Part shown: in pieces, positions 1 through 63,990 of the stretch
Layout of the letters: each line of letters starts with the position of its first letter
Numbering within the stretch: position 1 is the stretch's first letter
Sequence record: PQ464590.1
DNA: 64,000 nt
Direction: 5' to 3' (one strand)
Notes under the pieces: model-generated
Told to the model about the DNA's origin: nothing
The model's input: only the letters and a program-made list of their open reading frames with translations
Database searches by the model: none
Made by a program: the position numbers and the translations under genes

Positions 1-1214
1 TTATTAGCAGCACGCATCTTATCCAATATACCAGCAGCGGCACTTTTTGGTGCTAGTTTACCTTTAGAACTAATGAAACGGTCATCACCAACATAGGTAT
101 ATTCGATTCCTTTTCCTGACTTCCACTTGTCACCAATCTTAACATCAGCAGTTTCATTATATTTGTCAATTTTAGCTTTAGCTGCACGATCAATACTCAT
201 AGCAGCAGAACTATTCATAGGCTTTTTAGTTTGGGAACTAATCCATTGACCACCTTTTCGAATATACTGCACACCAGCACGAGAAGTAATAAGATATCCT
301 TCTGGGATTTCAGTACTGGAACTCTCATCTCCTTCAGCTTCACGAACTTCTGAACGTTTTTCTTGACCATATCGACCCATTACTTGTGGTTGGAATGGTT
401 TCTGAGAAGGTTTTTGTACTTTACCAGCATCTTGAATATCTTTCTCTGGTTTAGCACCAGTTAATGAAGGGAAGTCAGCAGGGTTTTTCTGTACAAATTG
501 AATATATTGTTGTTTTACTGACTGTGCTTTTGCATCATCTAATACTACATTACCGTCATTATCGCAGAAGTTTTTACCATTCCACTCGGCTCGCATATTT
601 TTGTCACGCAACATGATAGTACTGTTAACAGGTAGAACATCATTGCCAGTTTCATGACGTAACCAACGAGCTTGACGAATCCCTTCAGCCCATAATTTTT
701 TAGTAAGTACGTTATCAGCAGTACTCCCATCTCTTAGACTCACAAAACGGGATTGTTTTGGAATAAAACGATATCCTTGAACTTCCAAACCAGCAGGGAT
801 TGTAATATCTTCTGCATGTGGTGGAAGAATGAAGAAATTAAGAGCGTTCCACTCCTTGTCTAAGGTTTCCCGTGATACATCATAGACACGTTGATCATCT
901 GCAATCACTTCACTAAGTACTGAAGATTCTGAAAGTAGAATACCATCCTCAGTGAAGCGATTTTTTCCAACATAAGTATAAGTCTTACCAGTGAAATTGA
1001 AGCTTTCTCCAATCATTCGAGTATTATTACGGTTATGTTCGATAATTTGTTTCTTAGCTGCCTCATTCATTTGGGGAGCTTTGTTTGGATCGATCATCTT
1101 CATATTCTTATGATTGAACCAAATTCCTTCAAAATAAATGTATTCGGAACCTTTATGTGAAGTGTAAATGTAGCCATTTGGTACTACTCTATTAGTACCG
1201 AAAAGATTTATCAT
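1..1214 (-). CDS. Hypothetical virion-region protein with an internal ~80-aa duplication; partial, runs off the left edge
   Basis: Manually translated from ATG 1214 (RBS AGGAG) with no stop to position 1: MINLFGTNRVVPNGYIYTSHKG...KMRAAN. Absent from the ORF track because it has no stop in the window. Confidence 0.85.
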   Translation of the reverse strand, partial: MINLFGTNRVVPNGYIYTSHKGSEYIYFEGIWFNHKNMKMIDPNKAPQMNEAAKKQIIEHNRNNTRMIGESFNFTGKTYTYVGKNRFTEDGILLSESSVLSEVIADDQRVYDVSRETLDKEWNALNFFILPPHAEDITIPAGLEVQGYRFIPKQSRFVSLRDGSTADNVLTKKLWAEGIRQARWLRHETGNDVLPVNSTIMLRDKNMRAEWNGKNFCDNDGNVVLDDAKAQSVKQQYIQFVQKNPADFPSLTGAKPEKDIQDAGKVQKPSQKPFQPQVMGRYGQEKRSEVREAEGDESSSTEIPEGYLITSRAGVQYIRKGGQWISSQTKKPMNSSAAMSIDRAAKAKIDKYNETADVKIGDKWKSGKGIEYTYVGDDRFISSKGKLAPKSAAAGILDKMRAAN

Positions 1215-1226
1215 GATTGTCTCCTA

Positions 1227-1775
1227 TTATGACAGCATTGCTAGAAGCTGCTCACGTTCTGCTTGAGATAGAGCAGATAACTTAGCGTCTAGACCACCAG
1301 CTTCTGAATTTCCTTGTGCTGGAGCAGATTGTGCAGGCTGCTCAGTATTAGTACTGGAGCTTGGCTGTCCTTGTGGTTGTGGTTTAGCAGAATCATCACC
1401 TTGATTGTACTGTGCAGTTGTTTGTTTACGAGCAGCTTGTAGAAGAGCATTACCAACATCTTTAGGACTAAAAGAAAGATTCTGATTAGTTCCTAGAGCA
1501 GATGTATCTAGACCATTACTCTTGAAAAATGCTGCAACATCAGCGAAAGGTACAGAAGATTGTGCTTTACCATATTTACGTCCAATCATTCTTTTGAATT
1601 CTACCCATAGACGGTTAGCTAGTTCACCAGATTCTTTAGCTCCAGCTTCTACCTGACCAGAACCAAACATACCTTTAACTCCACCTTTAGCGGAATCAAT
1701 GGCTGATTGGGTACGAGAATACGGACGCTCATTCAACGGTTCCGCATCTTCAAATAGTTCGTTTAACATACTCAT
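1227..1775 (-). CDS. Hypothetical protein with Q/P/S-rich C-terminal linker
   Basis: 182-aa ORF in operon with the structural genes. Confidence 0.75.
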   Translation of the reverse strand: MSMLNELFEDAEPLNERPYSRTQSAIDSAKGGVKGMFGSGQVEAGAKESGELANRLWVEFKRMIGRKYGKAQSSVPFADVAAFFKSNGLDTSALGTNQNLSFSPKDVGNALLQAARKQTTAQYNQGDDSAKPQPQGQPSSSTNTEQPAQSAPAQGNSEAGGLDAKLSALSQAEREQLLAMLS

Positions 1776-1780
1776 TCGTA

Positions 1781-2317
1781 TTATCCTTTTTTACCATATC
1801 CAGCAGACATGAACTCTGCATAATTAGCTTTCTTTGCTCCTAGTTTATTTAGAGCATCCTGAACTGCATCTTCTGCACGTTCTTGTCCAGCGAGTTCCTG
1901 ACCTTCTGGTTCCGCTTTACCAAATGGTTCACTTAGTACTGGGATATATTCATCCAATTCTAGTTCATCAGCGGTTTCTAGTTCCATTTCAATTGGTTCG
2001 TTCTTACCACGAACACGAAGAAGTGCTTCTGACCATTTTAACATACTACCAATTTCATATAGTAGTACTTCTGGTTGTAGGCCACGTGTACAAGTAAAAT
2101 CCATCCACCAAATTTCACCACAATCCAAGTTATAGAACTCTAAAGGACGATCTTGGAAAATAGATTTTAGTAATGGGCCAATTTCGGTAGCATCATAACG
2201 GTCACGCAGTCTAGCATGAATCTTACTTAGGTCTTCTTTAGACGGTTCAGATGCAAATTTGATGCGGTATTCATATTCAGGAGTGCTATCGATTAAGATT
2301 TGTTGTAGTTTATTCAT
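1781..2317 (-). CDS. Hypothetical protein in the virion module
   Basis: 178-aa ORF with GGAG RBS, operonic. Confidence 0.75.
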   Translation of the reverse strand: MNKLQQILIDSTPEYEYRIKFASEPSKEDLSKIHARLRDRYDATEIGPLLKSIFQDRPLEFYNLDCGEIWWMDFTCTRGLQPEVLLYEIGSMLKWSEALLRVRGKNEPIEMELETADELELDEYIPVLSEPFGKAEPEGQELAGQERAEDAVQDALNKLGAKKANYAEFMSAGYGKKG

Positions 2318-2342
2318 AATAACTCCGTAACAGTAGTTTCAT

Positions 2343-4452
<2,110 letters not shown>

Positions 4453-5317: not shown

Positions 5318-6007
5318 TTACTGCTGATTAAAGAAGTTTGAATCTTTAATACTAGTAGTAGGGATTGATGTTTGAGCACCACTAATACTAGTAGCGTTTT
5401 CAGGAGTACCGTTACCAGTAACTTCATCACCGAATGGTAAACCAGTTGGACCTAGTTTTGCACAACCGTCTGGTTGAATGGACATCGTGATTACTTGTGG
5501 GTTACTATCGGAATAGTCCCATTCACCGAAGTTTGAATCAGCAATGAAACATCCTTGACAAACCCAAGTACTTTGAGTACCTTCAAAAAGGTTAGTAGTA
5601 CTTTCACTATTTGAACCATCCATTTCTTGAATCCACATTTCAAATTTGAATTGTGAATCAGTTAGACGTGATTCCTGCGTGTAGTAGTTAAATTCTTTAC
5701 GCATTTGGTTATAAATTGCTTTGGAACTCATGTTTCCTACCGAGTCACGGAAAGCGACTTCGATTGGACTCCACGTGTACTTGCCCTTGTAGTGTGCACT
5801 ACTGTTATAACTGTGCACAGTTACGTTTTCGTGTTCTACATGCACCGCACCTACTGTATTTGTGTCAATGGTAATGTGATTACCATCATCTCCAGCACCA
5901 AAGCCAAAAAAGATTACGCGGAATTTGTATTTCGCTTTTGGTTGCTTCATGGAAATGCGACCGCCACCAGGGAGGGGTACTCCATATTTATCTATCATAT
6001 TTGCCAT
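5318..6007 (-). CDS. gp19: Tail tube protein (gp19-like)
   Basis: Directly downstream of the sheath gene; WSPIEVAFRD, WVCQGCF and GEWDYSDS.P motifs. Confidence 0.8.
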   Translation of the reverse strand: MANMIDKYGVPLPGGGRISMKQPKAKYKFRVIFFGFGAGDDGNHITIDTNTVGAVHVEHENVTVHSYNSSAHYKGKYTWSPIEVAFRDSVGNMSSKAIYNQMRKEFNYYTQESRLTDSQFKFEMWIQEMDGSNSESTTNLFEGTQSTWVCQGCFIADSNFGEWDYSDSNPQVITMSIQPDGCAKLGPTGLPFGDEVTGNGTPENATSISGAQTSIPTTSIKDSNFFNQQ

Positions 6008-6046
6008 GTATTGATCTCCAATTCACAAGGTAAATTCTCTTTAATT

Positions 6047-6052
6047 TATTTA
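6047..6052 (-). promoter_or_regulatory. Putative late promoter (TAAATA)
   Basis: ATAAATA upstream of the tail tube gene. Confidence 0.5.
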
Positions 6053-6087
6053 TCAGATAATTATTCGGAATTGGAGTTACATAATAG

Positions 6088-6110
6088 AAAAGGGAGCTAA
6101 AAGCTCCCTT
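6088..6110 (-). terminator. Intrinsic terminator after tail sheath gene
   Basis: AGGGAGCT/AGCTCCCT hairpin plus U-run. Confidence 0.75.
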
Positions 6111-6119
6111 ATTGGTTAA

Positions 6120-8765
6120 TTACCCTTGTGTCTTTTCGATACGAATTGGCACATAAATGTAGTTGATAGTACGAGTAGGTTGGATCGCAATGTCCATCCA
6201 TAGTTCAGTACGGTCAATACGTGCTGGGGTGTTGTTTGATTCATCACATACAACGGTAAAGTCATATAGACCATTTAGTTGAACAAGTTCAGCTAAGAAA
6301 CTATTCACTACACCAGTAAACTCTTGGCGAGTACTTGGGGTATTTAGACGGAATAGGAATGGTTCTGCCATGATTTCTAGTTGACGACGAATATACACAA
6401 TTAGACGTGCCACGTTAACGTTCGCCAGTGCAGAGGTTTCGTTAGCAGTTAGAGTTTTATCTCCAAATACTAATAGACCACGCGTTGGACGCATCGCAAT
6501 CGGGTTAATCTTGTTCGGGTACATCACGTCACGTTGGCCTTGGTTGTAAACAACTGGCTCGTATTCACCTTCTGCGTTGATGTAACCTACAGAACTTGCG
6601 TTAGTTACTACACCACGAGTAGTACCTGCTGGTGGATACCATACATAGGAAATACTGTCACTGTACGCATAGGTACGCATTGCGATAGTACTACCAGGTA
6701 CGGCAACTTCTTCACCATCAACGTTAGTACTTAAGCACCAACCCATGTACTGTGCAGCATAGTCATATGCAGTAGTACGGCCTAGATCACCATTACTTGG
6801 TGCATTGTTCGCGTTGGTTGCCCAAGCCTGAACAGCAGTAGCGGATGGGGATAGACGTGCTGGAACATCAGTTACGATGAAAGCAGTTTCTTTACGGTCC
6901 GTGTTTAGTGTTACTAGTTCATCAAGTAGTTCAACATACCCTGGAGCACAAAGTAGGTTAAAATCGATTGATTCAGAACGGATAGCTTCGTTACCAACGA
7001 TAACTGCCGCCATTGCTTCTACAATGATTTGGCGTTGTGCATGGCGACCGAATAAACCAGAACCATCAACTGCTACACCACTAGCAACTTCCCAATTACC
7101 ATTAACCATTTTCTTAACAACACCTTCAGTATTGCCTAGGTCGATTGCAAGCATACCATTCTGGTACAAGTTGGCACTTGGTACTGAACCATTAAAGTCC
7201 GCATAAATCATACCGTTTAAAGTACTTTGATCAGCAGGATCTAGTTTAATCCATTCACCTTGTACGTTACGATAAAACTCATAACCATCAACACCTTGAG
7301 AAAGTGGTAGTACCCAGAAATCTCTGTCCGCTGCTGGTTCATCAACTTGGATGTATTTGTTAAGGGAATCAACTAGATCCCATTCTTCAGTAACCGTGTT
7401 AGCAACATACAGGGTAACTGTTAGGTTATCAGAGTTACTAAAGTCGTACCAGTAAGTACCGTTCGGTGCTTTAGCACGAGGTTCAGTTGAATTAACATAT
7501 AAGTTAGCAGTGTTTACTAGACCATAGTTAGAACTGTCTTGAGTTAGTTTCTTGAGTTCTTGTGCACTGAATAGTGCTTCACCACTTTGCACAACCTTGA
7601 AGCTATAACCATTCTTGTTGATGATGGTTAGTGCAGAAGTGCCAGTAAATGAGAAACCTGCATTAATTAGTACTGCACTTTTATTCAAATTCTCAATGAT
7701 AGTAGCAGTGTTAACTAGATGACCTTGAGGAACAGCTAGTACTTTAACACTCTGATTCAAATAACTAATGGTTAAGTAACCGTCAGTTGCAGCAGTGTTT
7801 AATGATGCTTCACCAAGTGGGGTAGCTGGTGCAGTTTGGGTAGCGATACTCGCACGCTTCATATACAAAGAGAAACTCTTACTATCAATGTCAAATAATG
7901 ATGCGATGTAGCTAGAACTGAATTGACCAGTTTTTGATTCAATATCATAGAAACTGTTACCAGTAAACACATCAATATTCTGCCATACACGAGTTAGTGA
8001 AGCATAACGCTTAACAACAAAACGTGTACCGAAGTAGTTAGAACCGTTCTTAGTATATCCATCACGAATCCAAATGTTACCTTCGAAGATAGAAGAACCT
8101 ACTGGAACTTTGTTGATTGGAGATAGGTAAGTTTCTACCTGTACTAGACCAACAGCTTCGAATTTGTACATTAGGAATTGACCATTTGATGGATTATAAC
8201 GTAGTACTAGATCATCTACATTTAGTCCAATAACATCTACATCATCAATATCAGCGGCTGAAACAATACGTACTGGTTTTAGTTGCCAATCATAGAATGA
8301 TTGTGGGTTATCCTTTTTAGCAATGTATGCTTCAATTTGGGTTGCAGTGGTGTCAAACCATAGTGAACCGTTATTAACTGGGCCAGTTGGTTCTGTGCCA
8401 GTAGGGGCTAACTCGTTTAGGTCAATGTCAGCACGTACTACGTACGCACGGTTAGCAATTCCTAGATAAGAGTAAGTACCGTGTAGACCGTACTCGTTAA
8501 GTTCGTCACCTTGAACAACAGAACCTAAGTAAGTTTGAAAAACAGGAGTACCGAATGTATCTAGTGCAGCTTTTTGTGAGCTTAATAGTTGTAGCTTACC
8601 AGCGTTTGCTTTTAGTGTGCCTGGAGCCACAGCGGTACTTCCAGGAACCAATTTGTCTTGAGCAGTAGCGATGATGAAAAGCGGCACAGTCCCTGGGGCA
8701 GACGCAGTACTCATCGAGGTATCAGTTACTGGAACACTCACACCAGGTGATAATAAATCAGCCAT
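6120..8765 (-). CDS. gp18: Tail sheath protein (gp18-like)
   Basis: N-terminal LLSPGVSV, C-terminal WYPPAG..RG, KINPI, VFGDKT, NVARL and FTVVCDESNNTPARIDR. Confidence 0.95.
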   Translation of the reverse strand: MADLLSPGVSVPVTDTSMSTASAPGTVPLFIIATAQDKLVPGSTAVAPGTLKANAGKLQLLSSQKAALDTFGTPVFQTYLGSVVQGDELNEYGLHGTYSYLGIANRAYVVRADIDLNELAPTGTEPTGPVNNGSLWFDTTATQIEAYIAKKDNPQSFYDWQLKPVRIVSAADIDDVDVIGLNVDDLVLRYNPSNGQFLMYKFEAVGLVQVETYLSPINKVPVGSSIFEGNIWIRDGYTKNGSNYFGTRFVVKRYASLTRVWQNIDVFTGNSFYDIESKTGQFSSSYIASLFDIDSKSFSLYMKRASIATQTAPATPLGEASLNTAATDGYLTISYLNQSVKVLAVPQGHLVNTATIIENLNKSAVLINAGFSFTGTSALTIINKNGYSFKVVQSGEALFSAQELKKLTQDSSNYGLVNTANLYVNSTEPRAKAPNGTYWYDFSNSDNLTVTLYVANTVTEEWDLVDSLNKYIQVDEPAADRDFWVLPLSQGVDGYEFYRNVQGEWIKLDPADQSTLNGMIYADFNGSVPSANLYQNGMLAIDLGNTEGVVKKMVNGNWEVASGVAVDGSGLFGRHAQRQIIVEAMAAVIVGNEAIRSESIDFNLLCAPGYVELLDELVTLNTDRKETAFIVTDVPARLSPSATAVQAWATNANNAPSNGDLGRTTAYDYAAQYMGWCLSTNVDGEEVAVPGSTIAMRTYAYSDSISYVWYPPAGTTRGVVTNASSVGYINAEGEYEPVVYNQGQRDVMYPNKINPIAMRPTRGLLVFGDKTLTANETSALANVNVARLIVYIRRQLEIMAEPFLFRLNTPSTRQEFTGVVNSFLAELVQLNGLYDFTVVCDESNNTPARIDRTELWMDIAIQPTRTINYIYVPIRIEKTQG

Positions 8766-8810
8766 TTAAATCCTCCAAAAATTTGGTATTATCGAATATT
8801 CGTATAATGT

Positions 8811-8816
8811 TATTTA
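8811..8816 (-). promoter_or_regulatory. Putative late promoter (TAAATA)
   Basis: ATAAATA ~45 nt upstream of the sheath start. Confidence 0.55.
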
Positions 8817-8848
8817 TTGGAGGATGAAGTCTTATGTATTGAAAGTGC

Positions 8849-9496
8849 TTACTTTTGGTCAAGAATACCGTGCATGATGATTCTTGCGGCCTTATGTAAA
8901 TCTTCTACTGTACCATCATTTTGTACAATCTGACGTGGTTCATTACGCCCAATCCAAGCCCATTCAGAACTATGAATACCTTCTAGTGTTTCTGGTACTG
9001 GAACAGTTCTGTTCATATCTTGAAGTACATTGTATGCATAAGCGGAACTGTACCATAATGGGGTGTTACGCTGTACTTCAATTATATGTGCTTCGTTCTC
9101 GCGAAGCATTTTGATCTCGTTCGGGAATCGACAATCAGTAATGATAATATTCCCTTCAATTTGACGCATTTTGTTCTCTAGTGAGAAAACCCAAGTATTA
9201 TCGTGGAAGTGTTTTCTAACTACATCAGTACCGAAGTTTTGAAGTACCCAACGTGGAGTTACATCAAAGCCAAGTTTAGATGACCAGTACTGGTCAACTG
9301 TTTCACGCTCTTCACGAGCTTCTTTAGTATGTCCTTCCAGCATAGTTCTGTCCCATCCGAAGATTACAGATACTGCATCTTTTAGAGTGGTTGCGAATGA
9401 CATACGGTGAAATCCACCTTCATCAATGAAAACTTGACTGAAAGTGTCTTTGCCTGAACCAATTGTTCCGTTGATAGCTACTATTTTACGTTCCAT
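8849..9496 (-). CDS. Deoxynucleoside monophosphate kinase (T4 gp1-like)
   Basis: Walker A GTIGSGKD, SFATTLKD, PRWVLQNFGTD and ITDCRFPNE. Confidence 0.9.
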   Translation of the reverse strand: MERKIVAINGTIGSGKDTFSQVFIDEGGFHRMSFATTLKDAVSVIFGWDRTMLEGHTKEAREERETVDQYWSSKLGFDVTPRWVLQNFGTDVVRKHFHDNTWVFSLENKMRQIEGNIIITDCRFPNEIKMLRENEAHIIEVQRNTPLWYSSAYAYNVLQDMNRTVPVPETLEGIHSSEWAWIGRNEPRQIVQNDGTVEDLHKAARIIMHGILDQK

Positions 9497-9509
9497 GTAT
9501 TGTACCTAT

Positions 9510-9541
9510 AAAAAAAGAAGAGACATTCCATGCCTCTTCTT
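9510..9541 (-). terminator. Intrinsic terminator after neck gene
   Basis: AAGAAGAG/CTCTTCTT hairpin plus U-run. Confidence 0.65.
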
Positions 9542-9549
9542 GTTGATTG

Positions 9550-10335
9550 TTAACCGATAATGAATGCCAGTGGAGTACCACCATCTTTGTAGTTACGTAG
9601 CTGCATCTCTAATTTTTCCTGAAGTGCTGCTGCTTCCTGACGTAGTTCTGAACCATCCATACTGAACGTACCTTGTGGACCTGGTAGCGTTGCGAATTTG
9701 GAACGGTTACGCCCTAGCATCATCATAGCTTCTGATAATGCCCAATCACGTAGCCAAGGATAAGACATTTGACGTTGGAATAGCATAGCTTCTGGAACGT
9801 TCTGGTATACATGAAGGAGAACATCTTCTTCACCACGGATATCACGATCAAGAATTAATTTCTTGTTCACTGAGTTCCATTGGAAAATGATTTCACGACC
9901 GAACAAACGGGCAACTGTTTCATCGAACTGATGATATAAGTCGTAAGTCAATAGTCCACCGCCAGTACTGCCACGTACAGCAGAAAGTAGATATGCGTTA
10001 CTATATGCCAAGCTGAATGGGTCAACAGTACTACTATTGCCTGAAACAACACCGTTACCACGACGATAAATGCGGCGAACAATTTCTACTTCAGTTGGTA
10101 AAACGTAGGATGATTCGGAAGGATATAGCTTCATGTGTAAGAATGCTTCTTCTTTAGAAGCACTAGACCATGCTCGGTAGTTCTCTACGGCAATATCGAT
10201 TGCAACTTCCAGTTGATCATCAGTGAGTTCAACTTCAACAGCACCAGCACCTAGTTTTTTGGTGATAGTATCTTTAAGTTTCTCTCTGTGATCATAGTTT
10301 GGGGCTTCTGGATCGCCCTGATAATCGTATGACAT
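9550..10335 (-). CDS. gp13: Neck protein (T4 gp13-like)
   Basis: LGAGAVEVELTDDQLEVAID and LPGPQGTFSMDGSEL; start set at the ATG after RBS GAGGT. Confidence 0.85.
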   Translation of the reverse strand: MSYDYQGDPEAPNYDHREKLKDTITKKLGAGAVEVELTDDQLEVAIDIAVENYRAWSSASKEEAFLHMKLYPSESSYVLPTEVEIVRRIYRRGNGVVSGNSSTVDPFSLAYSNAYLLSAVRGSTGGGLLTYDLYHQFDETVARLFGREIIFQWNSVNKKLILDRDIRGEEDVLLHVYQNVPEAMLFQRQMSYPWLRDWALSEAMMMLGRNRSKFATLPGPQGTFSMDGSELRQEAAALQEKLEMQLRNYKDGGTPLAFIIG

Positions 10336-10366
10336 AAGCACCTCTAAAAGTCATGTTACTGTACTG

Positions 10367-10372
10367 TATTTA
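10367..10372 (-). promoter_or_regulatory. Putative late promoter (TAAATA)
   Basis: CTAAATA upstream of the neck gene. Confidence 0.55.
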
Positions 10373-10387
10373 GAGGTGCTTCGTATC

Positions 10388-10600
10388 TTACTGTATAATT
10401 GAACGAACTAGCTCAATCATGTTATCGTACGATTCAAATTCACCGTACTTTGTCATTCCATCAGTACTGATCCAAGTTCGTTTGAGTTTGAATTCAGAAC
10501 CAATAGAGTAAGGATTTGGTGGATTGCCACGTTCGACAATCCAAGTTCCGGTTGAGTCCGTTACGTACACAATACCCTTACTTTTATATACAGATCTCAC
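10388..10600 (-). CDS. Hypothetical protein
   Basis: 70-aa ORF abutting the upstream gene. Confidence 0.6.
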   Translation of the reverse strand: MRSVYKSKGIVYVTDSTGTWIVERGNPPNPYSIGSEFKLKRTWISTDGMTKYGEFESYDNMIELVRSIIQ

Positions 10601-10984
10601 TTACGCTTTTTCGAAGTTCTGGGTGAAGAAGTCTAGACGTTCGCCAGTGAATGGTCCCAGTACTAGAACTGTACTTTCTTCATCGAACGCATTCATAGGA
10701 ACACTTTCATTCTCCGCAAGGTAAGAGATTTCATTCATAGAATCAATATCTTCCGCAAAGAAGACTTCCTGGCGTAGTCCATTATCTTTCACCCATGAAT
10801 CCCAGTGCTTGGTGAATTCACCAGCTTCAAATGAACCGACATACGAGTTGGAACGCGAATTGTACTGATGTAGTACCGTCATTCCAGCCATAACCATTTC
10901 TTTGGTTACATCTTCTGGGTTAGTACCTTTTAGTACTACGATTGCTTGATATGTTACTTTTGGAGCGTCTTCTTTACGAATCAT
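10601..10984 (-). CDS. Peptidyl-tRNA hydrolase 2 (Pth2)-fold protein, divergent
   Basis: YQAIVV...W..W......EVFFAEDIDSMNEI...TVLVLGPF..ERLD.FT resembles the Pth2 layout; the canonical catalytic motifs are not clear. Confidence 0.45.
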   Translation of the reverse strand: MIRKEDAPKVTYQAIVVLKGTNPEDVTKEMVMAGMTVLHQYNSRSNSYVGSFEAGEFTKHWDSWVKDNGLRQEVFFAEDIDSMNEISYLAENESVPMNAFDEESTVLVLGPFTGERLDFFTQNFEKA

Positions 10985-10996
10985 GATTTTACCTTA

Positions 10997-11329
10997 TTAG
11001 ATGATGATTTTCTTCTCAGGAGGCATAATAACACCAACGGAGGATTGTGTCAATGCTTCAACCGCAGAAACATACTCAGCACCTAGACCTGGTTCAACTT
11101 CACATACTGCAATGATATTGGACTTCATGAAAGTCACTGGAGCATCATCAGCAATGATTCCACCTAGGAAGGAAACGATTTGAATGTTTCCAGCTTCATC
11201 CTGACCTAGCTGTGCTGGGTGCATGGTGATTAGGGAATCTTGAGTTTCGCCTTGCAGTACTGCTAGAATTGGGCCGTGGTTAGCGATGTCTAGTAGTTTT
11301 ACAACGATTTTTGCTTTATCTTGTGCCAT
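10997..11329 (-). CDS. Sm-like domain protein of T4-like phages
   Basis: All-beta N-terminus, C-terminal helix and G-V-I-x-P-P-x-K-K-I-I tail typical of this family. Confidence 0.5.
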   Translation of the reverse strand: MAQDKAKIVVKLLDIANHGPILAVLQGETQDSLITMHPAQLGQDEAGNIQIVSFLGGIIADDAPVTFMKSNIIAVCEVEPGLGAEYVSAVEALTQSSVGVIMPPEKKIII

Positions 11330-11356
11330 GATAATCTTCCTTGATTAGTTTGTCAA

Positions 11357-11881: not shown

Positions 11882-11895
11882 AAATTCTCTCGATG

Positions 11896-11922
11896 AAAAA
11901 AGGACTCATGATTTGAGTCCTT
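11896..11922 (-). terminator. Intrinsic terminator
   Basis: AAGGACTCA/TGAGTCCTT hairpin plus U-run. Confidence 0.8.
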
Positions 11923-11929
11923 GGAATTG

Positions 11930-12175
11930 TTAGTCTTCAGAACCAAAACGAATTCGTCTAAGTTCCTTGCGATTCTTTCTTGCTACTGTGCTTTGGTGTA
12001 AGCGAATACTGCGTTTCATGTCCTTTTCAACGTACCACGAATCTTCGGGTGCATTATAGTCACAATAACCTTCTTCTGTAATTGTACCCAAGAATGGTGA
12101 TTTCTTAGGAATTGCAGTCACTTTAGGTTCGCTCTTGAATTGGCCTTGAGCTAATTGTTCACGGAAACTAGTCAT
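11930..12175 (-). CDS. Hypothetical basic protein
   Basis: Start moved to MTSFRE (RBS GGAG). Confidence 0.65.
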   Translation of the reverse strand: MTSFREQLAQGQFKSEPKVTAIPKKSPFLGTITEEGYCDYNAPEDSWYVEKDMKRSIRLHQSTVARKNRKELRRIRFGSED

Positions 12176-12223
12176 AGTATTTCTCCCAAATATTATCGAA
12201 GAACTTGTGTTCTTCATATATAT

Positions 12224-13221: not shown

Positions 13222-14325
13222 TTATTGGAAAATTTTCTGTACCTCAGCGACACGCTTACCCTTCACGAACTCGCGGATATCACTGGGCTGGAGTGCTCCA
13301 TCTTTCAGCATCTGTTCAATATCACCGATGACTGTGTTCTCGAAACGATCATACACCTTGATAATAAAATCTTCAAGATCTAGATCGATTTCTTTACGAA
13401 GGATAAAGTACTCAAGTACTTGGTACAGGAATTCTTCACCACCGTTGTTCTTCACATTCATCTCAGTAAGGATATTTACCATCTCTTCTGGGGTGCTGCG
13501 ACGGAAACCTTTGATACTATCTTTATGTTTCTGAATGAACTTATTGAATTTCACAAAGCGGGATGGAATCTTGGCTTGACCAAATACATTATCCTTTAGT
13601 TCCAGATTACCAATAAGTTCCGCCCAGATAAAGTACTCTTTATACATCTCTGTGCAGTTCTTACTCATATACTCAATTGGCTTGAAGTTTGGCTTATGAC
13701 CAGGAAGAAGAATATCCAATGCACCCCATTGATGCAGTTTCTTCAGAAAAATAACTGGGTTCTCTTCCGAGAATGCTTTCTCGAACTCTACATACACACG
13801 CTCTTTCGTTAGATGTGCCAAGTCACCACGCTCAATCATCGTGCGGACTAATTCTTCAGTACTTTCATGTACTTTAAAATCGTCATAACGAGCACGGAAA
13901 CGAGCAAGACGTAGTACCCGTACTGGGTCTTCTGCGAAGTGTTCAGATACATGACGAAGGATCTTGTTCTTTAGGTCTTCTTTGCCGTTGTACGGGTCCA
14001 CATGGACTTTTAGTTGTGGGTCGAATGCAATGGCGTTGATTGTTAGATCGCGTCTGTAAAGGTCTTGTGCGAGCGTTACGCCCTGTGTATTCGTTTCGAA
14101 ACCACTGTAACCCTCACCGACTTTACGTTCAGTACGGGCTAGTGCGTGCTCATTACCCTCTTTATCGATGTAAACAGGGAAGTCAGCACCAACTTGTTCG
14201 AATCCAATACTTTTCAAGTACTCGATATCACGCTTAGTTGCATTCACAAGTACATAATCTTTATCTTTTGGACGTTTACCCAAAAGTCTATCTCTAACGT
14301 AGCCACCTACCAAATATTTTTTCAT
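13222..14325 (-). CDS. cca: tRNA nucleotidyltransferase (CCA-adding enzyme)
   Basis: YLVGGYVRD, DKD, VGADFPV, EHALARTERK, DLYRRDLTINA and EDPVRVLRLARF. Confidence 0.95.
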   Translation of the reverse strand: MKKYLVGGYVRDRLLGKRPKDKDYVLVNATKRDIEYLKSIGFEQVGADFPVYIDKEGNEHALARTERKVGEGYSGFETNTQGVTLAQDLYRRDLTINAIAFDPQLKVHVDPYNGKEDLKNKILRHVSEHFAEDPVRVLRLARFRARYDDFKVHESTEELVRTMIERGDLAHLTKERVYVEFEKAFSEENPVIFLKKLHQWGALDILLPGHKPNFKPIEYMSKNCTEMYKEYFIWAELIGNLELKDNVFGQAKIPSRFVKFNKFIQKHKDSIKGFRRSTPEEMVNILTEMNVKNNGGEEFLYQVLEYFILRKEIDLDLEDFIIKVYDRFENTVIGDIEQMLKDGALQPSDIREFVKGKRVAEVQKIFQ

Positions 14326-27641: not shown

Positions 27642-27813
27642 GTAATTTCCTTGTATATGTTCGTGATATACTCGTACCTCGTATATCAGAATTTCAATGA
27701 TCTCGATTTCACTAACGTTCATCTCGTTCATTTCAATTCATTCAATATACTTTAAGTACTTTATACTTGACACGGTTTGTGATCCAATTCCATCCCCCCA
27801 CAGGGGAGGGACG

Positions 27814-29902: not shown

Positions 29903-30517
29903 TTAGGCTTCGGCTGTCAACTCTTTTTTGAGTTTTTTCATGTACCTGTTATACAGACCTACATGGTGGTGCATACTGGTTTCAAGGAACTCTTGAATGG
30001 ACAGTTTTTTACCCTTCTTCTTCTCCAGATTACGTTCACGTTGGCGTTGTGCATTCTCTTCATCGTGCTTCTCTACATCATCCCAGTACTGTTCAGTACT
30101 TGTATCTTTGTACAGGTCAAGGAAGTCTTGCAGATTTTCATACTTAGCACCACGTTTGATGTTACAGCGTTCACACATGGTGTTGTAGTTTTCAGTACAA
30201 TCCGGCCCACCTTTGGATTTAAGAATAGCGTGGTCCACGGTAAACATAACCTCACGGCCTTTGTGGGTGTACCCGTACACGTTCAAATGCTCACTACCAT
30301 ATACTGGGTGTGCACAAGCTTTCATACGCTCTAAACGTATCTCAGTGGCTTCTAGACCACAGTTAATGCACGTACATGAGCGTTGGAATGTCTTCACCTT
30401 CTCGAAGTCATAATGGAAGTGAACTCCTTGAATTTCCATAAAGTTCTTATCATCAGTGATGAGTTCCAGTGAACTCAAAGGGAGAACGCGTTTTACTGTG
30501 TACTTTCCACGAGCCAT
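29903..30517 (-). CDS. HNH endonuclease-family protein
   Basis: CINC...FTVDHAILKSKGG....N...MCERCN..RG. Confidence 0.85.
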   Translation of the reverse strand: MARGKYTVKRVLPLSSLELITDDKNFMEIQGVHFHYDFEKVKTFQRSCTCINCGLEATEIRLERMKACAHPVYGSEHLNVYGYTHKGREVMFTVDHAILKSKGGPDCTENYNTMCERCNIKRGAKYENLQDFLDLYKDTSTEQYWDDVEKHDEENAQRQRERNLEKKKGKKLSIQEFLETSMHHHVGLYNRYMKKLKKELTAEA

Positions 30518-49441: not shown

Positions 49442-49554
49442 GAAAGTACTATCACCCAGGGTGTTGGTAGTTCCGAGTAGGGATACCCTGAATTAGCATT
49501 GAAGCGTACGGTCTGATACTGATTTTACCCAGATGCACGGCTTATAGTACTTTC
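49442..49554. ncRNA. Candidate ~113-nt structured RNA or cis-regulatory leader
   Basis: 11-bp closing helix GAAAGTACTAT/ATAGTACTTTC enclosing two further stems; intergenic; strand unresolved. Confidence 0.45.
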
Positions 49555-52160: not shown

Positions 52161-53011
52161 TATTTTAGCGTATTCTTCCACTTGTTGAGTTTAGTGAGCA
52201 TGTACGTCAAGAACTCACGTTCGATTTCTTCAGGAGTCATATTATGACACTGCAACGCGAACATGTCAAGTGCACAAATAGCTAAATCTACCGCTTCACC
52301 CTTGATACCATCTTTGCCAGGTTCTTTGTATGAAAGACCTTGTGAGATGTTGATTTCAAGAGATAACTCACCTAGCTCTTCTGCACACTTCTTCATGACA
52401 TAATCTTCATGGCGTGATGCGTCTGTACCTTTTTTGCCTAGACCCACACTCATGTTGAACATTGACACTAATGATAATTCATCAAGAGAGATATTGTCAA
52501 GCTTATCTTTCAACTCATTCATCTCTTGCCATTCATCGTGTGGTACGATTTCGTACGGTGATAATGGTAATGTTTGTGTTTCACTCTTCGCCGCTTCTTT
52601 CAACTTCTGTACATAACCCTTTGCAGTACTAGTACTGACATTATTCATGTAATTCACAGCAGTACGTTGCTTGTTAGTCATGGATGGATCGAAGTACGAG
52701 ATATTACGATTGTACTTCTCCAGTAGATTACTTAGGCGATCCATACGGCCTTGGTGTTTTTCAGTATCACGCTCATTCTTGTGTGCGTACTCAAGACGAT
52801 AGATTGCTAACAGGATTTCGCCATCTGGAGTTATACGGTAATCTTTCCAAGCCCCACGCCCATTACCAAAAATACTATCAGGATTAGGCTCAAGATATCC
52901 ACCATCCAGAAGGAACTGTAGACTTGTTTTTGTTTCACCTTTCATGCTACGAACGTCGAAGTTTAAAGAACCTTTCTCGTTAGCATGATACAACATCTTT
53001 TCAATATTCAT
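52160..53011 (-). CDS. Two-domain protein with C-terminal MazG-like nucleotide pyrophosphohydrolase
   Basis: KCAEELGEL...GEAVDLAICALD; N-terminal winged-helix-like segment. Confidence 0.7.
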   Translation of the reverse strand: MNIEKMLYHANEKGSLNFDVRSMKGETKTSLQFLLDGGYLEPNPDSIFGNGRGAWKDYRITPDGEILLAIYRLEYAHKNERDTEKHQGRMDRLSNLLEKYNRNISYFDPSMTNKQRTAVNYMNNVSTSTAKGYVQKLKEAAKSETQTLPLSPYEIVPHDEWQEMNELKDKLDNISLDELSLVSMFNMSVGLGKKGTDASRHEDYVMKKCAEELGELSLEINISQGLSYKEPGKDGIKGEAVDLAICALDMFALQCHNMTPEEIEREFLTYMLTKLNKWKNTLK

Positions 53012-56838: not shown

Positions 56839-58305
56839 TTATAGGTTTTTCTCTGCGAACTCTGCGAGTGGAGAACGAACAACACCTTCTAGCTCAATTA
56901 CACGGCAACCAGGCCAGTCTTTGAATTTCTCGGTAACGTACGTTAGACCACTGTTCGTTGCACTGATGAACTTACTATCAATCTGGGAGAGGTTCCCCAT
57001 GATGATAACTTTACAGTTCTCACCTGCACGAGTCAGGATTGTTTTTGCCTGTGCTGGAGTAATGTTCTGGAATTCATCCACGATTAGAATCGTGTTGATG
57101 AAACTACGTCCACGGATGAAGTTCAGTGCTTTGAACTGAATCTGATTACGTTTCATAATCTCTTCAATGGAACCTTGAGGGTTCGCGTCATCTTTGTGTA
57201 GATATTCCAATGCATCAATCGCCGCACCACAGAACGGGATTACCTTCTCCGCTTCTGTGCCTGGTAAGAAACCAATCTCTTCAAATTGTGAATCCTGTGT
57301 CTTAGAGAAGATCACACGCTCAAAATGATTTCCACGGTTCTTAGGCTCCAGTACTAAGTCCAAAGCACATGCTAAGGTGATTAGTGTTTTACCTGTACCC
57401 GCTGAACCTAATAGTACTGTAATGTGTACATCAGGATCAAGAATACTATTGATTGCCATCGCTTGCTTCACGTTCTTAGCTTTGATGTCCCAGACTTTCT
57501 GACGAAGTGCTTGACTCTGACCAACATCCAAGAATATTTGGTACACAGTTTCATCAACTTCACCATCTGTGAACTCGCGATCACCAAGGCCATCATACAC
57601 TAAAAGTAGCTCATTGTCATCATAAATGTAGTCACCACAGCATAGACCGTCAGGAAGTAGACCATCAAGAGTACCTTCTGGAACCATGTGGTATAGTTTA
57701 CGACCTTCTTGTGTACTGAACACTTCTACATTCTTGTCTTCAATCTCTTTCCAGAAGTCAAAATCAATTAGATGATGACCAGTGTGGATTAGATCCGAGT
57801 CAGAAATGGTAACATCATTACGATAATCCTGTACTTCAACACCGTAAGCCATAGCTTTGATACGCATGTTGATATCACGAGTTACCAGTACTGAACCAGT
57901 TGCTAATGCTACAAGAATAATCTTGTCGTCCGGTACGGAACTATGCATTAGTGTAGCTACTTTTGCAGCTTCTTCATCAGGTTTGTCCTGATTCATAGCA
58001 CGCAATAGTGCTTCAGCTTCTTCAGCAGTAACGATTTGCAAACGACTGTCTGAATCCAAATGTGGATGCAGACGGGACATATCCACTCCAGTAGCTGAAA
58101 TTTCTTCGTGAGTAGCTTCTTCAAGAATGTTGCTGATGTTACGGATAGCGATACGTGCATCACGTGATACGTCAACGTTACGACTCTTGATTGAATCCAA
58201 CTCTTCCAGTACTGTAAATGGTAGTACTACTGTTGCTCCTTTGAATGCAGTTACTGCACTATGGTCACTTAGTAGTACGTTTGTATCGATAGCATATTTT
58301 TTCAT
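56839..58305 (-). CDS. phoH: PIN domain-PhoH ATPase (PhoH2/YlaK-like)
   Basis: YAIDTNVLL, VLEELD, LVTRD.NMR, GSAGTGKT, IGFLPG, RGRSF, DEFQN and GNLSQID. Confidence 0.92.
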   Translation of the reverse strand: MKKYAIDTNVLLSDHSAVTAFKGATVVLPFTVLEELDSIKSRNVDVSRDARIAIRNISNILEEATHEEISATGVDMSRLHPHLDSDSRLQIVTAEEAEALLRAMNQDKPDEEAAKVATLMHSSVPDDKIILVALATGSVLVTRDINMRIKAMAYGVEVQDYRNDVTISDSDLIHTGHHLIDFDFWKEIEDKNVEVFSTQEGRKLYHMVPEGTLDGLLPDGLCCGDYIYDDNELLLVYDGLGDREFTDGEVDETVYQIFLDVGQSQALRQKVWDIKAKNVKQAMAINSILDPDVHITVLLGSAGTGKTLITLACALDLVLEPKNRGNHFERVIFSKTQDSQFEEIGFLPGTEAEKVIPFCGAAIDALEYLHKDDANPQGSIEEIMKRNQIQFKALNFIRGRSFINTILIVDEFQNITPAQAKTILTRAGENCKVIIMGNLSQIDSKFISATNSGLTYVTEKFKDWPGCRVIELEGVVRSPLAEFAEKNL

Positions 58306-59549: not shown

Positions 59550-60308
59550 CTATTTTACTCTCTCATTTACGATATCAATAATTTCCAGGATTGCTTTTGT
59601 GATCGGCTTGTAGATTTTTTTGTCGAATGTCCAGTCGTTCTCACCACGTTTGAGGTTCACATTCACCGTGTAAGCTGGAGTACCTAAGCCAACCATGTCG
59701 CTCCATTTCAAAATTGTATCAGAAGAACCAATTATAATAACTGTATCAAGTTCTGTCAAGCTTTGCAGTACTTTATTTCTTTCCGCATAAAGTTCAAGAC
59801 GCTGTCCATCAACGTAACGCTCGGATTCACCAAGGAAAACAACGTTAGGTTTAGCATATACGTCCTCTTTTGGAATATATGGTTCATAACCAACATCCAG
59901 TACTGTAAAGTCGTTGTGAGCCATAGAATATCCCTCAATTACTTCTTTGAGGTTCCCATGAAGGTGCATGGCAGTCCCACCAGCACGCTCATACAAATCG
60001 TCCACATTAGCTGTAATGTGCAAGAAACGATCACCCAATTCAGCTTCTAGTCCAGCAATGGCGTAGTGTGCATCATTTGGTTCTTTATCCTTCAACATCA
60101 CTCGGAGAGTATTATAGAATGAATGAATGTGAGCGTACTTACTACCTAAGCTTGCAATATTACAAACATCATTGATGTTCACACCTTCCCATAATGCATC
60201 TTCTGCATCACGAAAAGTACTAATGCCTGATTCAGCACTAAGACCAGCACCGCTTAGAATTAACAAACGTTTCTGTCCCTTAGCTGCAATAAATTTATTC
60301 ACATCCAT
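59550..60308 (-). CDS. Sir2/CobB-like NAD-dependent deacylase
   Basis: SGAGLSAESGISTFRD, TANVDDLYERAG, HLHG, KPNVVFLGE and IIGSS. Confidence 0.9.
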   Translation of the reverse strand: MDVNKFIAAKGQKRLLILSGAGLSAESGISTFRDAEDALWEGVNINDVCNIASLGSKYAHIHSFYNTLRVMLKDKEPNDAHYAIAGLEAELGDRFLHITANVDDLYERAGGTAMHLHGNLKEVIEGYSMAHNDFTVLDVGYEPYIPKEDVYAKPNVVFLGESERYVDGQRLELYAERNKVLQSLTELDTVIIIGSSDTILKWSDMVGLGTPAYTVNVNLKRGENDWTFDKKIYKPITKAILEIIDIVNERVK

Positions 60309-61424: not shown

Positions 61425-61454
61425 GATATTACCCTCTATTGTTAAAGTACTGAC

Positions 61455-62050: not shown

Positions 62051-62073
62051 ATGATACTCCTGTTTGTTTGATT

Positions 62074-62098
62074 AAAAAAGAGGGAGGCAATGCCTCCC
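62074..62098 (-). terminator. Intrinsic terminator after nadV
   Basis: GGGAGGCA/TGCCTCCC hairpin plus U-run. Confidence 0.85.
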
Positions 62099-62106
62099 AA
62101 TATCAA

Positions 62107-63585
62107 TTATAGTCCTTTATTTGCACGAGCACGTACATCATCAAAGCTGCTTAGGTTCATGATCTCACCGTTGATATACATATCTACCATCATATCACGG
62201 AGGAATGGATTCACCTCTTGTAGCTCAATACGTTCGGCTAGGATCTTACCACTGCTGGTACATTCGTAAGTAGTCACACGACCACGTAGAGAACGTTTAC
62301 CAACATCGGTAATTGGGTCTTTGAACAGGTCTTCCCAAGTACCATCTGCTAGCTGCTGTGCAGAACCTTTCATTGCAAAGGAATATGTATCGCGGCCTTT
62401 CTCTGGGTGTACAAGTTTACCACCCATACCGAATACGATATTCTCTAAAGAGTACATCTTAGCTTCTAAGTTCTCAACGATAGTACGGATACTTTCTTCG
62501 TTGATGCCGTCGCCTTGAATAACTCCGATATAACCTGGAAGTACAGAATAGCCATTTGCGTTTACAGTACTACCAAATTTCTCCATCAAAATCTCTAGGA
62601 TTTCGATAGGCATTGTGGTTGGATCACCACTGTCTGGACGCATAACAAGTTTAGCACCAGGGCAGCGTTTACCAATCTCTTCAATTGTTGCTTTTAGTTT
62701 AGTACCGATGAAGTCACGCACGAAACGTTTAGCGTCATAAGTATCGATAACTACAGAAACAATTGGTGGTACACCTACTGAACCGTTAGCAATGTATTTC
62801 TCTACTTTCTTCTCCCATAGGCGAACCATTTTGATTGCCATGTTGAAGTCATCGCGTTTGTCCGCGTCAGAGTTAGAGCAAGTAGCACTGTGCTCACTAG
62901 CTGTAACACTGCTCAAGTACGCGTTCGTGGTGCGATAGTAAGCTTTGATGTAACGGTTAGCCGCTAGGCAGTCTGATCCATTGAACACCACAGCGTGAGA
63001 AATACCTGCAAGGATTGCAGACTCATAGCTTGATGCAGAACGGTCGCCAAAGTTATGCAAGTGGTAATCGACAAAGCGATGACCAGCGTGACGTTCCATA
63101 ACATCAGCAAGGAACACTTTGATACTACGAGCGTTCGAAGCTACAGTGGTAGGGAACTGCACTGCACGTTGAAGTTGAGTTTCAATGTACGATGCGATAA
63201 CTTTTACACGTGGATCAGTACTGAAGGAGCGTAATAGTGGAACTCCAACAGGAACTACAGTACCTTCTGGAATTGCACGGATGTGAAGCGGGAGTTTTCC
63301 ACCATGAACATTCACGATGTGTTCCCAGAATTCACGGTCAAAATCATCACCACGCTCAGTGGTTTCTAGTTCAGCTTCATCGATATCAGCCGTTGTAATC
63401 GTAATATCAAGGTACTCTTGGAGATAAATCTCTAGACCCATCATCACTACATGACTGGTATATTTTGTTGGCTTACGAGCAACGATGTTAGATTCTAGAC
63501 CGATTACACCGTCTTTCATCATAGCATCATGACCAGTTTTGTAAGAGTCAACGTTCAGGATAAAGTTCACATTTAGATTTTTCAT
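62107..63585 (-). CDS. nadV: Nicotinamide phosphoribosyltransferase
   Basis: DSYKTGH, LHNFGDR, FNGSD, ASEHS, SVVIDTYD, LVMRPDSGDP, IQGDGI and FGMGG.L. Confidence 0.95.
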   Translation of the reverse strand: MKNLNVNFILNVDSYKTGHDAMMKDGVIGLESNIVARKPTKYTSHVVMMGLEIYLQEYLDITITTADIDEAELETTERGDDFDREFWEHIVNVHGGKLPLHIRAIPEGTVVPVGVPLLRSFSTDPRVKVIASYIETQLQRAVQFPTTVASNARSIKVFLADVMERHAGHRFVDYHLHNFGDRSASSYESAILAGISHAVVFNGSDCLAANRYIKAYYRTTNAYLSSVTASEHSATCSNSDADKRDDFNMAIKMVRLWEKKVEKYIANGSVGVPPIVSVVIDTYDAKRFVRDFIGTKLKATIEEIGKRCPGAKLVMRPDSGDPTTMPIEILEILMEKFGSTVNANGYSVLPGYIGVIQGDGINEESIRTIVENLEAKMYSLENIVFGMGGKLVHPEKGRDTYSFAMKGSAQQLADGTWEDLFKDPITDVGKRSLRGRVTTYECTSSGKILAERIELQEVNPFLRDMMVDMYINGEIMNLSSFDDVRARANKGL

Positions 63586-63633
63586 ATTGTATTACCTCTT
63601 TGGTATTAGTTAGAGAAAGCTACACGCTTTCCA

Positions 63634-63990
63634 TTATGTTAGCAAACTCACCGGAAGTTTGTACTTCAATTCCGCGTTGGAGAACATATCTTTGTCTCCT
63701 GGGATCATCATTTTGAAGTATCTTTCCTCCTTAGAATTCACGATATCCAGTACTGGAAAAGTATTTCCATTTTTGTGTACTAGGATTCCGTTCGAAGTAT
63801 ATTCATGAACTGCACTCATATACTTCTTTGAAATTGTTAGGGTACAATCGTATACTTTTCCGTACTGATATACCCACTGACCAATGTCAGTACTTCTTGA
63901 ACCATCGAATGGATACTGAAAGTTCATATCAGAAGTACCGAACCATTGCCGAGCAATGAACCAAAACCTATTATGACCTTGTATATCCAT
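63634..63990 (-). CDS. Hypothetical protein
   Basis: 118-aa ORF. Confidence 0.6.
   Translation of the reverse strand: MDIQGHNRFWFIARQWFGTSDMNFQYPFDGSRSTDIGQWVYQYGKVYDCTLTISKKYMSAVHEYTSNGILVHKNGNTFPVLDIVNSKEERYFKMMIPGDKDMFSNAELKYKLPVSLLT

Follow-up and report, generated by a model that had tools for sequence, protein, structure and literature searches.

The palindromic hexamer AGTACT, together with its octameric form CAGTACTG, is present in a real and very strong excess in the DNA of Erwinia phage Hallingskeid (PQ464590.1, 366,158 bp), a T4-related jumbo myovirus of the Rak2-like group whose host is Erwinia aphidicola (PMC11780129). The stretch analysed here, in the following called the window, comprises 64,000 nucleotides and corresponds to positions 248001-312000 of the record; window positions 37000-46000 matched at 100% identity in a megablast search. 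The excess extends to the clade of this phage and is convergent in an unrelated Leclercia prophage. Tentatively, we suggest that selection may keep dispersed AGTACT copies as recognition sites for a dimeric factor acting in trans, by which phage DNA would be marked.

Excess over null models

The window has a G+C content of 38.9% and carries tail, nucleotide-metabolism, RNA-repair and nicotinamide adenine dinucleotide (NAD)-salvage genes, almost all of them on the minus strand. AGTACT was found 209 times (first copy at 312-317, last at 63889-63894) and CAGTACTG 63 times, where base composition predicts 20.8 and 0.8 copies, respectively. An initial annotation made from the letters alone had arrived at roughly 200 hexamers and 55-60 octamers against an expectation of 20-25 and about 1, which agrees well with these counts; only its by-eye G+C estimate of about 36% was too low. 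Dinucleotide-preserving shuffles of the window (n = 100) gave 19.9 ± 4.2 AGTACT with a maximum of 29, and Markov models of order 1, 2 and 3 gave 20.5, 46.9 and 95.2; the order-4 value of 167 includes the pentamers of AGTACT itself. Among all 4096 6-mers, AGTACT was the top outlier of the window (z = 41.6).

A more severe null model is the synonymous-codon shuffle within each gene, because it preserves every protein and the codon counts of every gene. Under this model the coding sequences of the window should contain 45.7 ± 5.6 AGTACT (maximum 61) and 6.1 ± 2.3 CAGTACTG, compared to 195 and 61 observed. The ratio of observed to expected copies (O/E) is therefore not near 1 under a codon-preserving null, a comparison that the initial annotation had proposed.

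Similar results were obtained for the genome as a whole, for which all figures refer to the complete 366-kb record (pieces L001-L008). Here, 1313 AGTACT were counted against 125 expected and 412 CAGTACTG against 6.9. Coding sequences held 1189 AGTACT, 3.8-fold above the synonymous shuffle (316 ± 16), with 164 ± 13 expected when codon order was shuffled. The density was 4.8 per kb in non-coding and 3.5 per kb in coding DNA, and with one site per 279 bp every 10-kb bin was populated.

Effects on codons and proteins

All three reading frames contain the motif. In the window, 79 copies were read as AGT-ACT, 36 as nAG-TAC-Tnn and 80 as nnA-GTA-CTn, to which copies in annotated spacers are added; a confinement to a single frame was thus not seen. 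For the genome the corresponding numbers were 555, 190 and 444 against 148, 69 and 99 in the synonymous shuffle, so that each frame lies 2.8-4.5 times above the null model. Both shuffles and the non-coding density rule out codon or amino-acid usage as the cause. The earlier proposal of a signal at the DNA level, found in all frames and between genes, is borne out by frames, spacers, symmetric flanks (see below) and the genome-wide excess over the synonymous null.

The pressure towards AGTACT has altered codon choice and even protein sequence. In the genome, 555 of the 882 Ser-Thr pairs (63%) are written AGT-ACT, compared to 129 expected (15%). The Ser-Thr dipeptide itself occurs 882 times against 517 expected, and the reversed Thr-Ser 498 times; Ser-Thr and Val-Leu are about 1.5-1.7 times too frequent, while Thr-Ser and Leu-Val match the amino-acid composition. 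Across six parts of the genome the AGT-ACT share of Ser-Thr pairs was constant (0.58-0.66), and regional differences in AGTACT density stem only from differing numbers of Ser-Thr and Val-Leu pairs. This constant share indicates that the pressure is uniform along the genome and limited by protein constraint. The codon usage of Hallingskeid is odd for an enterobacterial phage (CTA 25% of Leu, AGT 31% of Ser and GTA 41% of Val codons), which AGTACT largely explains. The cost in codons may be offset by the phage's own tRNA genes, which lie outside the window.

Shape of the motif and placement of the sites

The flanks of the genomic sites are dyad-symmetric. Position -1 is C in 56% and G in only 5% of the copies, position +1 is G in 51%, and further outwards T is preferred at -3 and -4 with A at the mirror positions. 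The extended consensus is TTCAGTACTGAA, i.e. TTC-AGTACT-GAA. Enrichment is graded by mismatch to the octamer, being 60-fold for no mismatch, 5.8-fold for one and 1.6-fold for two. A longer repeat or a miniature mobile element was rejected, as no information was found more than about 5 bp to either side and the commonest 12-mer accounts for 20 of the 1313 copies. Likewise, a Chi-like asymmetric signal with orientation bias does not fit a perfect palindrome with symmetric flanks.

Spacing in the genome is Poisson-like (mean 278, median 204, largest gap 2178 bp); in the window the mean is 306 bp and the largest gap 1253 bp. The density is flat near gene starts, near gene ends and along genes. A helical-phase or otherwise periodic arrangement was rejected, since the 3-bp coding period and the spacing within two promoter families (20 and 22 bp) were the only periods seen. 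These families lie outside the window, at record coordinates 5600-20400 (piece L001), and consist of repeated sigma-70-like early promoters with paired AGTACT 20 or 22 bp apart, for example agtactaTTGACA-N17-CATAAT and TTGCAT-N-cagtactgTATAAT. About 20 copies sit in such promoters. In the sigma-70-like promoters of the early region, AGTACT is placed upstream of the -35 element, overlapping it, abutting the -10 element or overlapping the latter. These several registers look like an opportunistic filling of free positions. At least four registers, taken with the flat metagene profile, led us to discard a promoter, operator or terminator element.

Two further candidates were dismissed on the basis of site structure. 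The octamer can be viewed as the overlapped half-sites CAGTA/TACTG of a LexA box, but the spacing of 18 needed for a box is not enriched and T is not preferred after CTG. A cutting site at the genome ends is contradicted by the record, which has no terminal repeat and does not end at AGTACT.

Distribution among related phages

The initial annotation had described the excess as the property of a single phage; this has to be widened to the whole clade and to an unrelated prophage. Clade samples consisted of the capsid-centred 41-kb region of EJP2, Munch, GAP32, Kaldavass and PBECO4, of XaC1, and of 50 kb of RaK2. In every one of these Rak2-like samples AGTACT was the top 6-mer outlier, with a 5- to 10-fold excess. 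Among 58 loci of at least 9 kb retrieved via the capsid protein, all 17 with a capsid at least 91% identical had an O/E of 3.2-7.1, one locus at 73% reached 3.1, and the 40 loci at 61-69% were centred on 1 (range 0-3.0).

The next relatives showed no excess, with 1 copy against 14.3 expected in Pseudomonas phage 30-2 (287 kb, PA5oct-like) and 3 against 5.2 in Atu_ph07 (490 kb). The same holds for T4 (7 against 9.4), T7 (4 against 13.1), lambda (5 against 5.0) and 50 kb of Escherichia coli K-12 (3 against 4.8). The strong avoidance in Pseudomonas phage 30-2 (L016) and T7 (L221) is ordinary phage behaviour. A search of the viral collection for close relatives via NrdD found none.

An unrelated prophage with the same motif

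The viral collection was also scanned for two octamers at most 30 bp apart, which gave at least 34 loci with 2.4-7 AGTACT per kb. Among the matches listed, 7 loci were Rak2-like, 23 came from contigs of about 33 kb belonging to one siphovirus-type element, and GCGC was missing from all 34 AGTACT-dense loci. This element has a lambda-type tail, an HK97-type capsid fused to a protease, a GpA-type terminase and a serine integrase, and it resides as an integrated prophage in Leclercia tamurae and a Leclercia metagenome-assembled genome. This prophage of about 33-34 kb is represented by L215 (1-16717) and L219 (1-17352, reverse strand), and also by L144, L145, L217 and L220. Its genes are structural and lysis genes, an HNH gene and the serine integrase; recognisable repressor or replication genes are missing.

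In the case of this prophage (34 kb, 41.9% G+C), 152 AGTACT, 56 CAGTACTG and no GCGC were counted, whereas 10.6 kb of adjoining Leclercia host DNA (52.7% G+C) has 3 AGTACT and 68 GCGC, with a sharp transition at both ends. Its coding sequences hold 122 AGTACT against 29.7 ± 4.8 in the synonymous shuffle; the frames follow the same order as in Hallingskeid (61, 17 and 44), and 66% of Ser-Thr pairs are AGT-ACT. Flank preferences of both lineages correlate with r = 0.90 over 24 cells. The O/E values of hexamers correlate as well, with r = 0.75 for the other 63 palindromic and r = 0.64 for the non-palindromic hexamers, as high as for Hallingskeid's own relatives; these values include a contribution of words that overlap AGTACT. 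For T7, lambda, T4 and E. coli the correlations were at most 0.46 (palindromic) and 0.20-0.31 (non-palindromic). In the integrase region of the prophage (L219 reverse strand, about 3.4-5.1 kb), GCGC is absent and AGTACT occurs just once.

Thus, the excess is convergent in an unrelated prophage. Comparison of the two lineages by tblastx, blastp and phmmer, also with regard to a shared gene for a protein that could read the motif, matched only a lysozyme. A match between the capsid proteases was spurious. A 42-residue match to the window gene at 26061-26546 was discarded as a shared reader, the protein having only 7 close homologues. Endonucleases, HNH enzymes among them, were also set aside as candidates for the whole clade: one is of a widespread homing type, and the one in the window is found in some clade members only.

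Turnover of sites and possible molecular drive

To describe how the density is maintained, sites were compared between Hallingskeid and EJP2, which share 76% nucleotide identity. Forty-three sites were common, 50 were found only in Hallingskeid and 43 only in EJP2, so that AGTACT retention was 46% compared to 25% for any hexamer. Turnover was then followed on a tree of 19 taxa (15.8 kb of ungapped columns) with 179 composition-matched hexamers as control; parsimony is noisy at such distances, and the control hexamers are equally affected. On this tree AGTACT was lost at 0.181 per site per branch against 0.274 for controls (180 losses, 272 expected), and it was gained 162 times against about 51 per control hexamer, gains being about equal to losses. 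The product of both ratios (about 4.8) corresponds to the standing regional excess. This indicates that the density is an equilibrium held by slower loss and faster gain.

Single-step gains arise at all six positions and via many base changes. Of the 18 one-off variants, all have an O/E of at least 1 except AGGACT (0.57) and its complement AGTCCT (0.77). With gains at all positions and no depleted variant, repair aimed at one particular mismatch is not indicated, and we rejected single-mismatch directed repair on these grounds.

A broader form of molecular drive, in which biased mismatch repair or gene conversion turns near-cognates into AGTACT without any benefit, is the best placed of the other explanations, although we regard it as unlikely. 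Such processes have precedents in very-short-patch repair, which enriches CCWGG, and in the uptake bias that enriches uptake sequences. A gain flux about three times that of control hexamers, the slower loss and the uniform density along the genome would all be expected from it; moreover, recombination is intense in T4-type phages, and the Hallingskeid annotation includes genes for it. However, neither the lack of a single depleted precursor (with the two exceptions mentioned) nor the spread of gains over six positions and many base changes agrees with such a bias. The Leclercia prophage shares motif and flanks, but no recombination or repair genes, with the jumbo phage, and the host DNA beside it is unaffected, which excludes a host-wide repair bias.

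Loss of other palindromes

The excess of AGTACT coexists with an extreme purge of other palindromes. GCGC is absent from the window (55.5 ± 6.6 expected) and from the genome (354 expected), and 22 palindromic hexamers have not a single copy in Hallingskeid, e.g. GGTACC, CTGCAG, GTCGAC and GGATCC. GAATTC and GATATC are 1.5-1.7 times above expectation. GCGC was missing in all 8 Rak2-clade samples and normal in the outgroups.

It could therefore be asked whether AGTACT is a by-product of restriction avoidance, i.e. a 'safe' palindrome into which the phage drifted, or which it tolerated, while G+C-rich palindromes were purged. The joint occurrence with the purge in Hallingskeid, the lack of GCGC in all 34 dense loci listed and the similar palindrome profiles of both lineages (r = 0.75 with AGTACT left out) would agree with this. 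Nevertheless, mere tolerance would give an O/E near 1 and not 10-14, and the motif is informative out to 12 bp and has altered protein sequences. Furthermore, the two traits are separable. One viral contig with a 66% identical capsid (L052) has no GCGC (15 expected) and 3 AGTACT against 5.1; a second with a 73% identical capsid (L040) has 14 AGTACT against 4.8 and normal GCGC; L066 lacks 29 palindromic hexamers and AGTACT as well. L040 and L052 are intermediate states, and the dissociation in these three contigs indicates that the excess is not an automatic result of the purge. We consequently consider this explanation improbable, slightly more so than drive.

Further explanations

A replication signal, with the octamer as preferred priming or initiation site on both strands, appears quite improbable. 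T4 gp61 primes at GTT or GCT and E. coli DnaG at CTG; CAGTACTG contains the GT-N and CTG types of triplet symmetrically, in both orientations, and a primase and a helicase are annotated in a genome where sites are dense and even. But trinucleotides are frequent by chance, so a motif of 8-12 bp would be superfluous. The prophage is without a primase of its own while the jumbo phage has a T4-type one, so that one common specificity is unexpected, and the chromosome of a host that uses DnaG shows no excess.

Still less probable is a physical role, in which TpA-centred palindromes would provide flexible kinks that aid condensation or ejection of a very long genome. The sites are evenly dispersed and symmetric, and the first carriers seen were jumbo phages; sister jumbo clades, however, show no excess (phage 30-2 and Atu_ph07), a 33-kb siphovirus does, and the exact hexamer with its flanks is favoured over other TpA-centred words (TGTACA with an O/E of 1.3, GTATAC with 0.69).

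The initial annotation had favoured, among others, a methylation-linked sink, in which a cognate methyltransferase marks AGTACT or GTAC and linked repair accumulates the sites. The analogy with HIP1 and its methyltransferases speaks for this, and Hallingskeid has two predicted methyltransferases (PMC11780129). Yet in the published Nanopore comparison of native and amplified Hallingskeid DNA (one data set) only GATC (N6-methyladenine) and CCWGG (5-methylcytosine) were modified, and no modification was found at AGTACT; nicks were detected in another phage of that study and none were reported for Hallingskeid (PMC11780129). A search of the genome for a cognate enzyme yielded only a phage Dam (PF05869) and a C5-cytosine enzyme (PF00145). 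These fit GATC and CCWGG, which leaves no orphan enzyme for AGTACT. No methyltransferase was seen among the prophage genes read. Together with the one-off variants and the gains at six positions this makes a sink very improbable. A restriction-modification target shielded by a phage methyltransferase was rejected because of the unmodified AGTACT in the same data (PMC11780129).

Least probable of all is a role in which the host nucleoid-occlusion protein SlmA would bind the sites and thereby stop infected cells from dividing. The SlmA site GTGAGTACTCAC has an identical AGTACT core (PMC3020112), the known carrier hosts are all Enterobacterales except for one reported Xanthomonas host, and sister clades without the excess were isolated on Pseudomonas and Agrobacterium, but SlmA requires a purine at position 3 of GTGAGTACTCAC in addition to G1, T2, A4 and G5 (PMC3020112), whereas position 3 is a pyrimidine in 75% and G in only 7% of phage half-sites, GT is not enriched at positions 1-2, and the 366 kb contain no perfect site and 4 copies of GTnAGTACTnAC.

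Possible function of the sites

We return to a recognition site for a dimeric factor as the tentatively preferred reading. On this reading, AGTACT with its TTC/GAA flanks and a pyrimidine just outside the core would form a dyad-symmetric site on double-stranded phage DNA, and natural selection would hold its density high and uniform. A perfect palindrome with symmetric flanks points to recognition of the duplex by a dimer, and symmetry, graded specificity, independence of position, uniform pressure, equilibrium turnover and the lack of modification all fit such a duplex-binding factor. This sequence-specific factor would read AGTACT in trans. What counts would be the number of sites per length of DNA and not their positions, and the density may mark the DNA as that of a phage. 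Candidate benefits would be protection, preferential use as a template (for replication, for expression or for packaging), and escape when host DNA is broken down. Further candidates, named by the initial annotation, would be a site for a genome-organising or packaging protein, or a cue for recombination. As the same motif and flanks occur in two lineages without shared genes, the reader is probably not encoded by both; it could be a host protein of the Enterobacterales, or a jumbo-phage product whose specificity is imitated by the prophage.

Phage DNA carries about 3.6 AGTACT per kb and no GCGC; host DNA carries 0.06-0.3 AGTACT and 6-7 GCGC per kb. This contrast, about 10- to 60-fold for AGTACT, would permit a near-perfect discrimination. 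Unlike T4, Rak2-like phages are without a hypermodified base for self-marking. A more speculative extension, which we hold to be rather doubtful, is that the AGTACT excess and the GCGC loss together form a sequence 'identity code' of an enterobacterial phage guild that is read in trans, and that the Leclercia prophage mimics it to survive or exploit jumbo-phage infection. Such a code would distinguish phage DNA from the host chromosome, so that it is spared during destruction of host DNA or selected as template.

Several observations weigh against a recognition site. Among the genes compared between both lineages no reader protein was identified, and T7 and lambda are without AGTACT excess, which is odd for a reader that is a host protein. 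To our knowledge, the SlmA site is the only enterobacterial site with an AGTACT core, and its flanks do not fit. A host with ScaI-type restriction would kill a phage carrying 1313 sites, so a large benefit is required, and none can be named. Within one close pair, precursors a single step away did not show a raised gain rate (1 observed, about 3.4 expected). Finally, slowed loss and raised gain would follow equally from biased repair or conversion.

Comparison with known repeated motifs

In pattern, the closest known system is HIP1 (GCGATCGC) of cyanobacteria. Both are octameric palindromes far above expectation that are dispersed genome-wide over all frames and spacers, both bias codon and amino-acid use, both keep a steady density while sites turn over, and the function of HIP1 is unsettled too. 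The comparison drawn by the initial annotation is apt in this respect, and AGTACT behaves as a highly iterated palindrome, though one distinct from HIP1. The Hallingskeid motif is CAGTACTG, and CGATCG has no copy in its genome; the carrier is phage or prophage DNA and not a cellular chromosome, the host chromosome being without the excess; no cognate methylation was found at AGTACT (one published data set); and the excess coexists with the purge of other palindromes. HIP1, in contrast, contains the methylated CGATCG and GATC.

Chi (GCTGGTGG), uptake sequences and KOPS are alike in that a short motif is kept dense by selection, is read by a machine acting in trans, serves as identity mark of own DNA and turns over at individual sites. 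They are asymmetric and orientation-dependent with known readers, whereas AGTACT is a perfect palindrome and marks phage and not host DNA. In the case of restriction avoidance, the hexamer is the same as the ScaI site and Hallingskeid does avoid 22 other palindromic hexamers, but for AGTACT the sign is opposite, with a 10-fold excess; T7 and a PA5oct-like phage show the usual depletion. The SlmA site (GTGAGTACTCAC, Enterobacterales) shares the AGTACT core, is likewise palindromic, and is bound by a dimeric protein of the helix-turn-helix type from the same order of hosts; it differs in that the phage flanks are incompatible with the requirements of SlmA and no perfect site occurs.

As a separate observation, the E. 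coli Chi octamer GCTGGTGG is itself enriched in the Hallingskeid genome, with 54 copies against about 4 expected. Copies in the window lie at 6628, 25681 and 44210 (plus strand) and at 1294, 23497, 33021, 53963 and 59977 (minus strand). Genome-wide, 35 copies are in the sense orientation relative to the local gene and 17 in the opposite one. Several relatives have CTGGTG as one of their top hexamers. The pattern suggests that protection against RecBCD has been selected for.

Individual sites and neighbouring genes

Representative sites of the window are collected in Table 1.

Table 1. AGTACT sites in the window (window coordinates; intergenic positions according to the GenBank annotation)
Feature	Position	Strand	Remark
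AGTACT copies	312..63894		209 dispersed copies, 63 as CAGTACTG
First full CAGTACTG	311..318		within a virion protein gene truncated by the window start
Frame 0 example	1350..1355	-	AGT-ACT = Ser-Thr
Frame 1 example	3867..3872	-	cAG-TAC-Ttt = Gln-Tyr-Phe
Frame 2 example	2064..2069	-	gaA-GTA-CTn = Glu-Val-Leu
AGTACT pair	13407..13420		starts 8 bp apart
CAGTACTG, then second AGTACT	30084..30100		starts 10 bp apart
CAGTACTAGTACTG	52624..52637		two abutting AGTACT copies
Intergenic AGTACT	start 16432		GenBank annotation
Intergenic AGTACT	27755..27760		CDS0499/CDS0500 spacer
Intergenic AGTACT	49445..49450		record spacer 297421-297579
Intergenic AGTACT	49546..49551		same record spacer as the 49445 copy
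Intergenic AGTACT	61446..61451		CDS0561/CDS0562 spacer

Two groups of neighbouring genes deserve mention. Two minus-strand genes (37265-39997 and 40589-43291) encode proteins of 910 and 900 residues without a Pfam match; they enclose a 190-residue gene and adjoin the genes of an anaerobic ribonucleotide reductase. The RNA-repair and NAD-salvage cluster (13222-14325, 20010-21263, 33816-35063, 56839-58305, 59550-60308 and 62107-63585) comprises a CCA-adding enzyme, an RNA ligase, an RlaP-type nucleotidyltransferase, a PIN-PhoH protein, a Sir2 protein and a nicotinamide phosphoribosyltransferase, which are probably counter-defence genes.

Implications

In the open literature (subscription journals excluded), including the genome papers of Hallingskeid, CBB and fEgEco12, we found no description of an AGTACT or CAGTACTG excess in phages. 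Phages are expected to shed short palindromes; here, one palindrome of the restriction type is raised at least ten-fold in genomes from which 22 others have been removed completely, and this push has changed the codons and amino acids of hundreds of genes. In practice, the mark could serve as a simple classifier for these phages in metagenomes, the 1313 sites predict an extreme sensitivity to ScaI-type restriction, and AGTACT matters when such genomes are recoded or synthesised.

The trait defines a clade of jumbo phages of which several members are considered for phage therapy and biocontrol. As it is clade-wide and has also originated in a temperate phage unrelated to this clade, some sequence-reading process with general significance probably acts on enterobacterial phage DNA. 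A fast lytic phage with 1313 sites and relatives that infect E. coli makes the function of highly iterated palindromes, a question dating back to HIP1, directly testable. If the identity code were true, it would be a sequence-based counterpart to the self-marking of T4 by base modification, and the first functional highly iterated palindrome in viruses.

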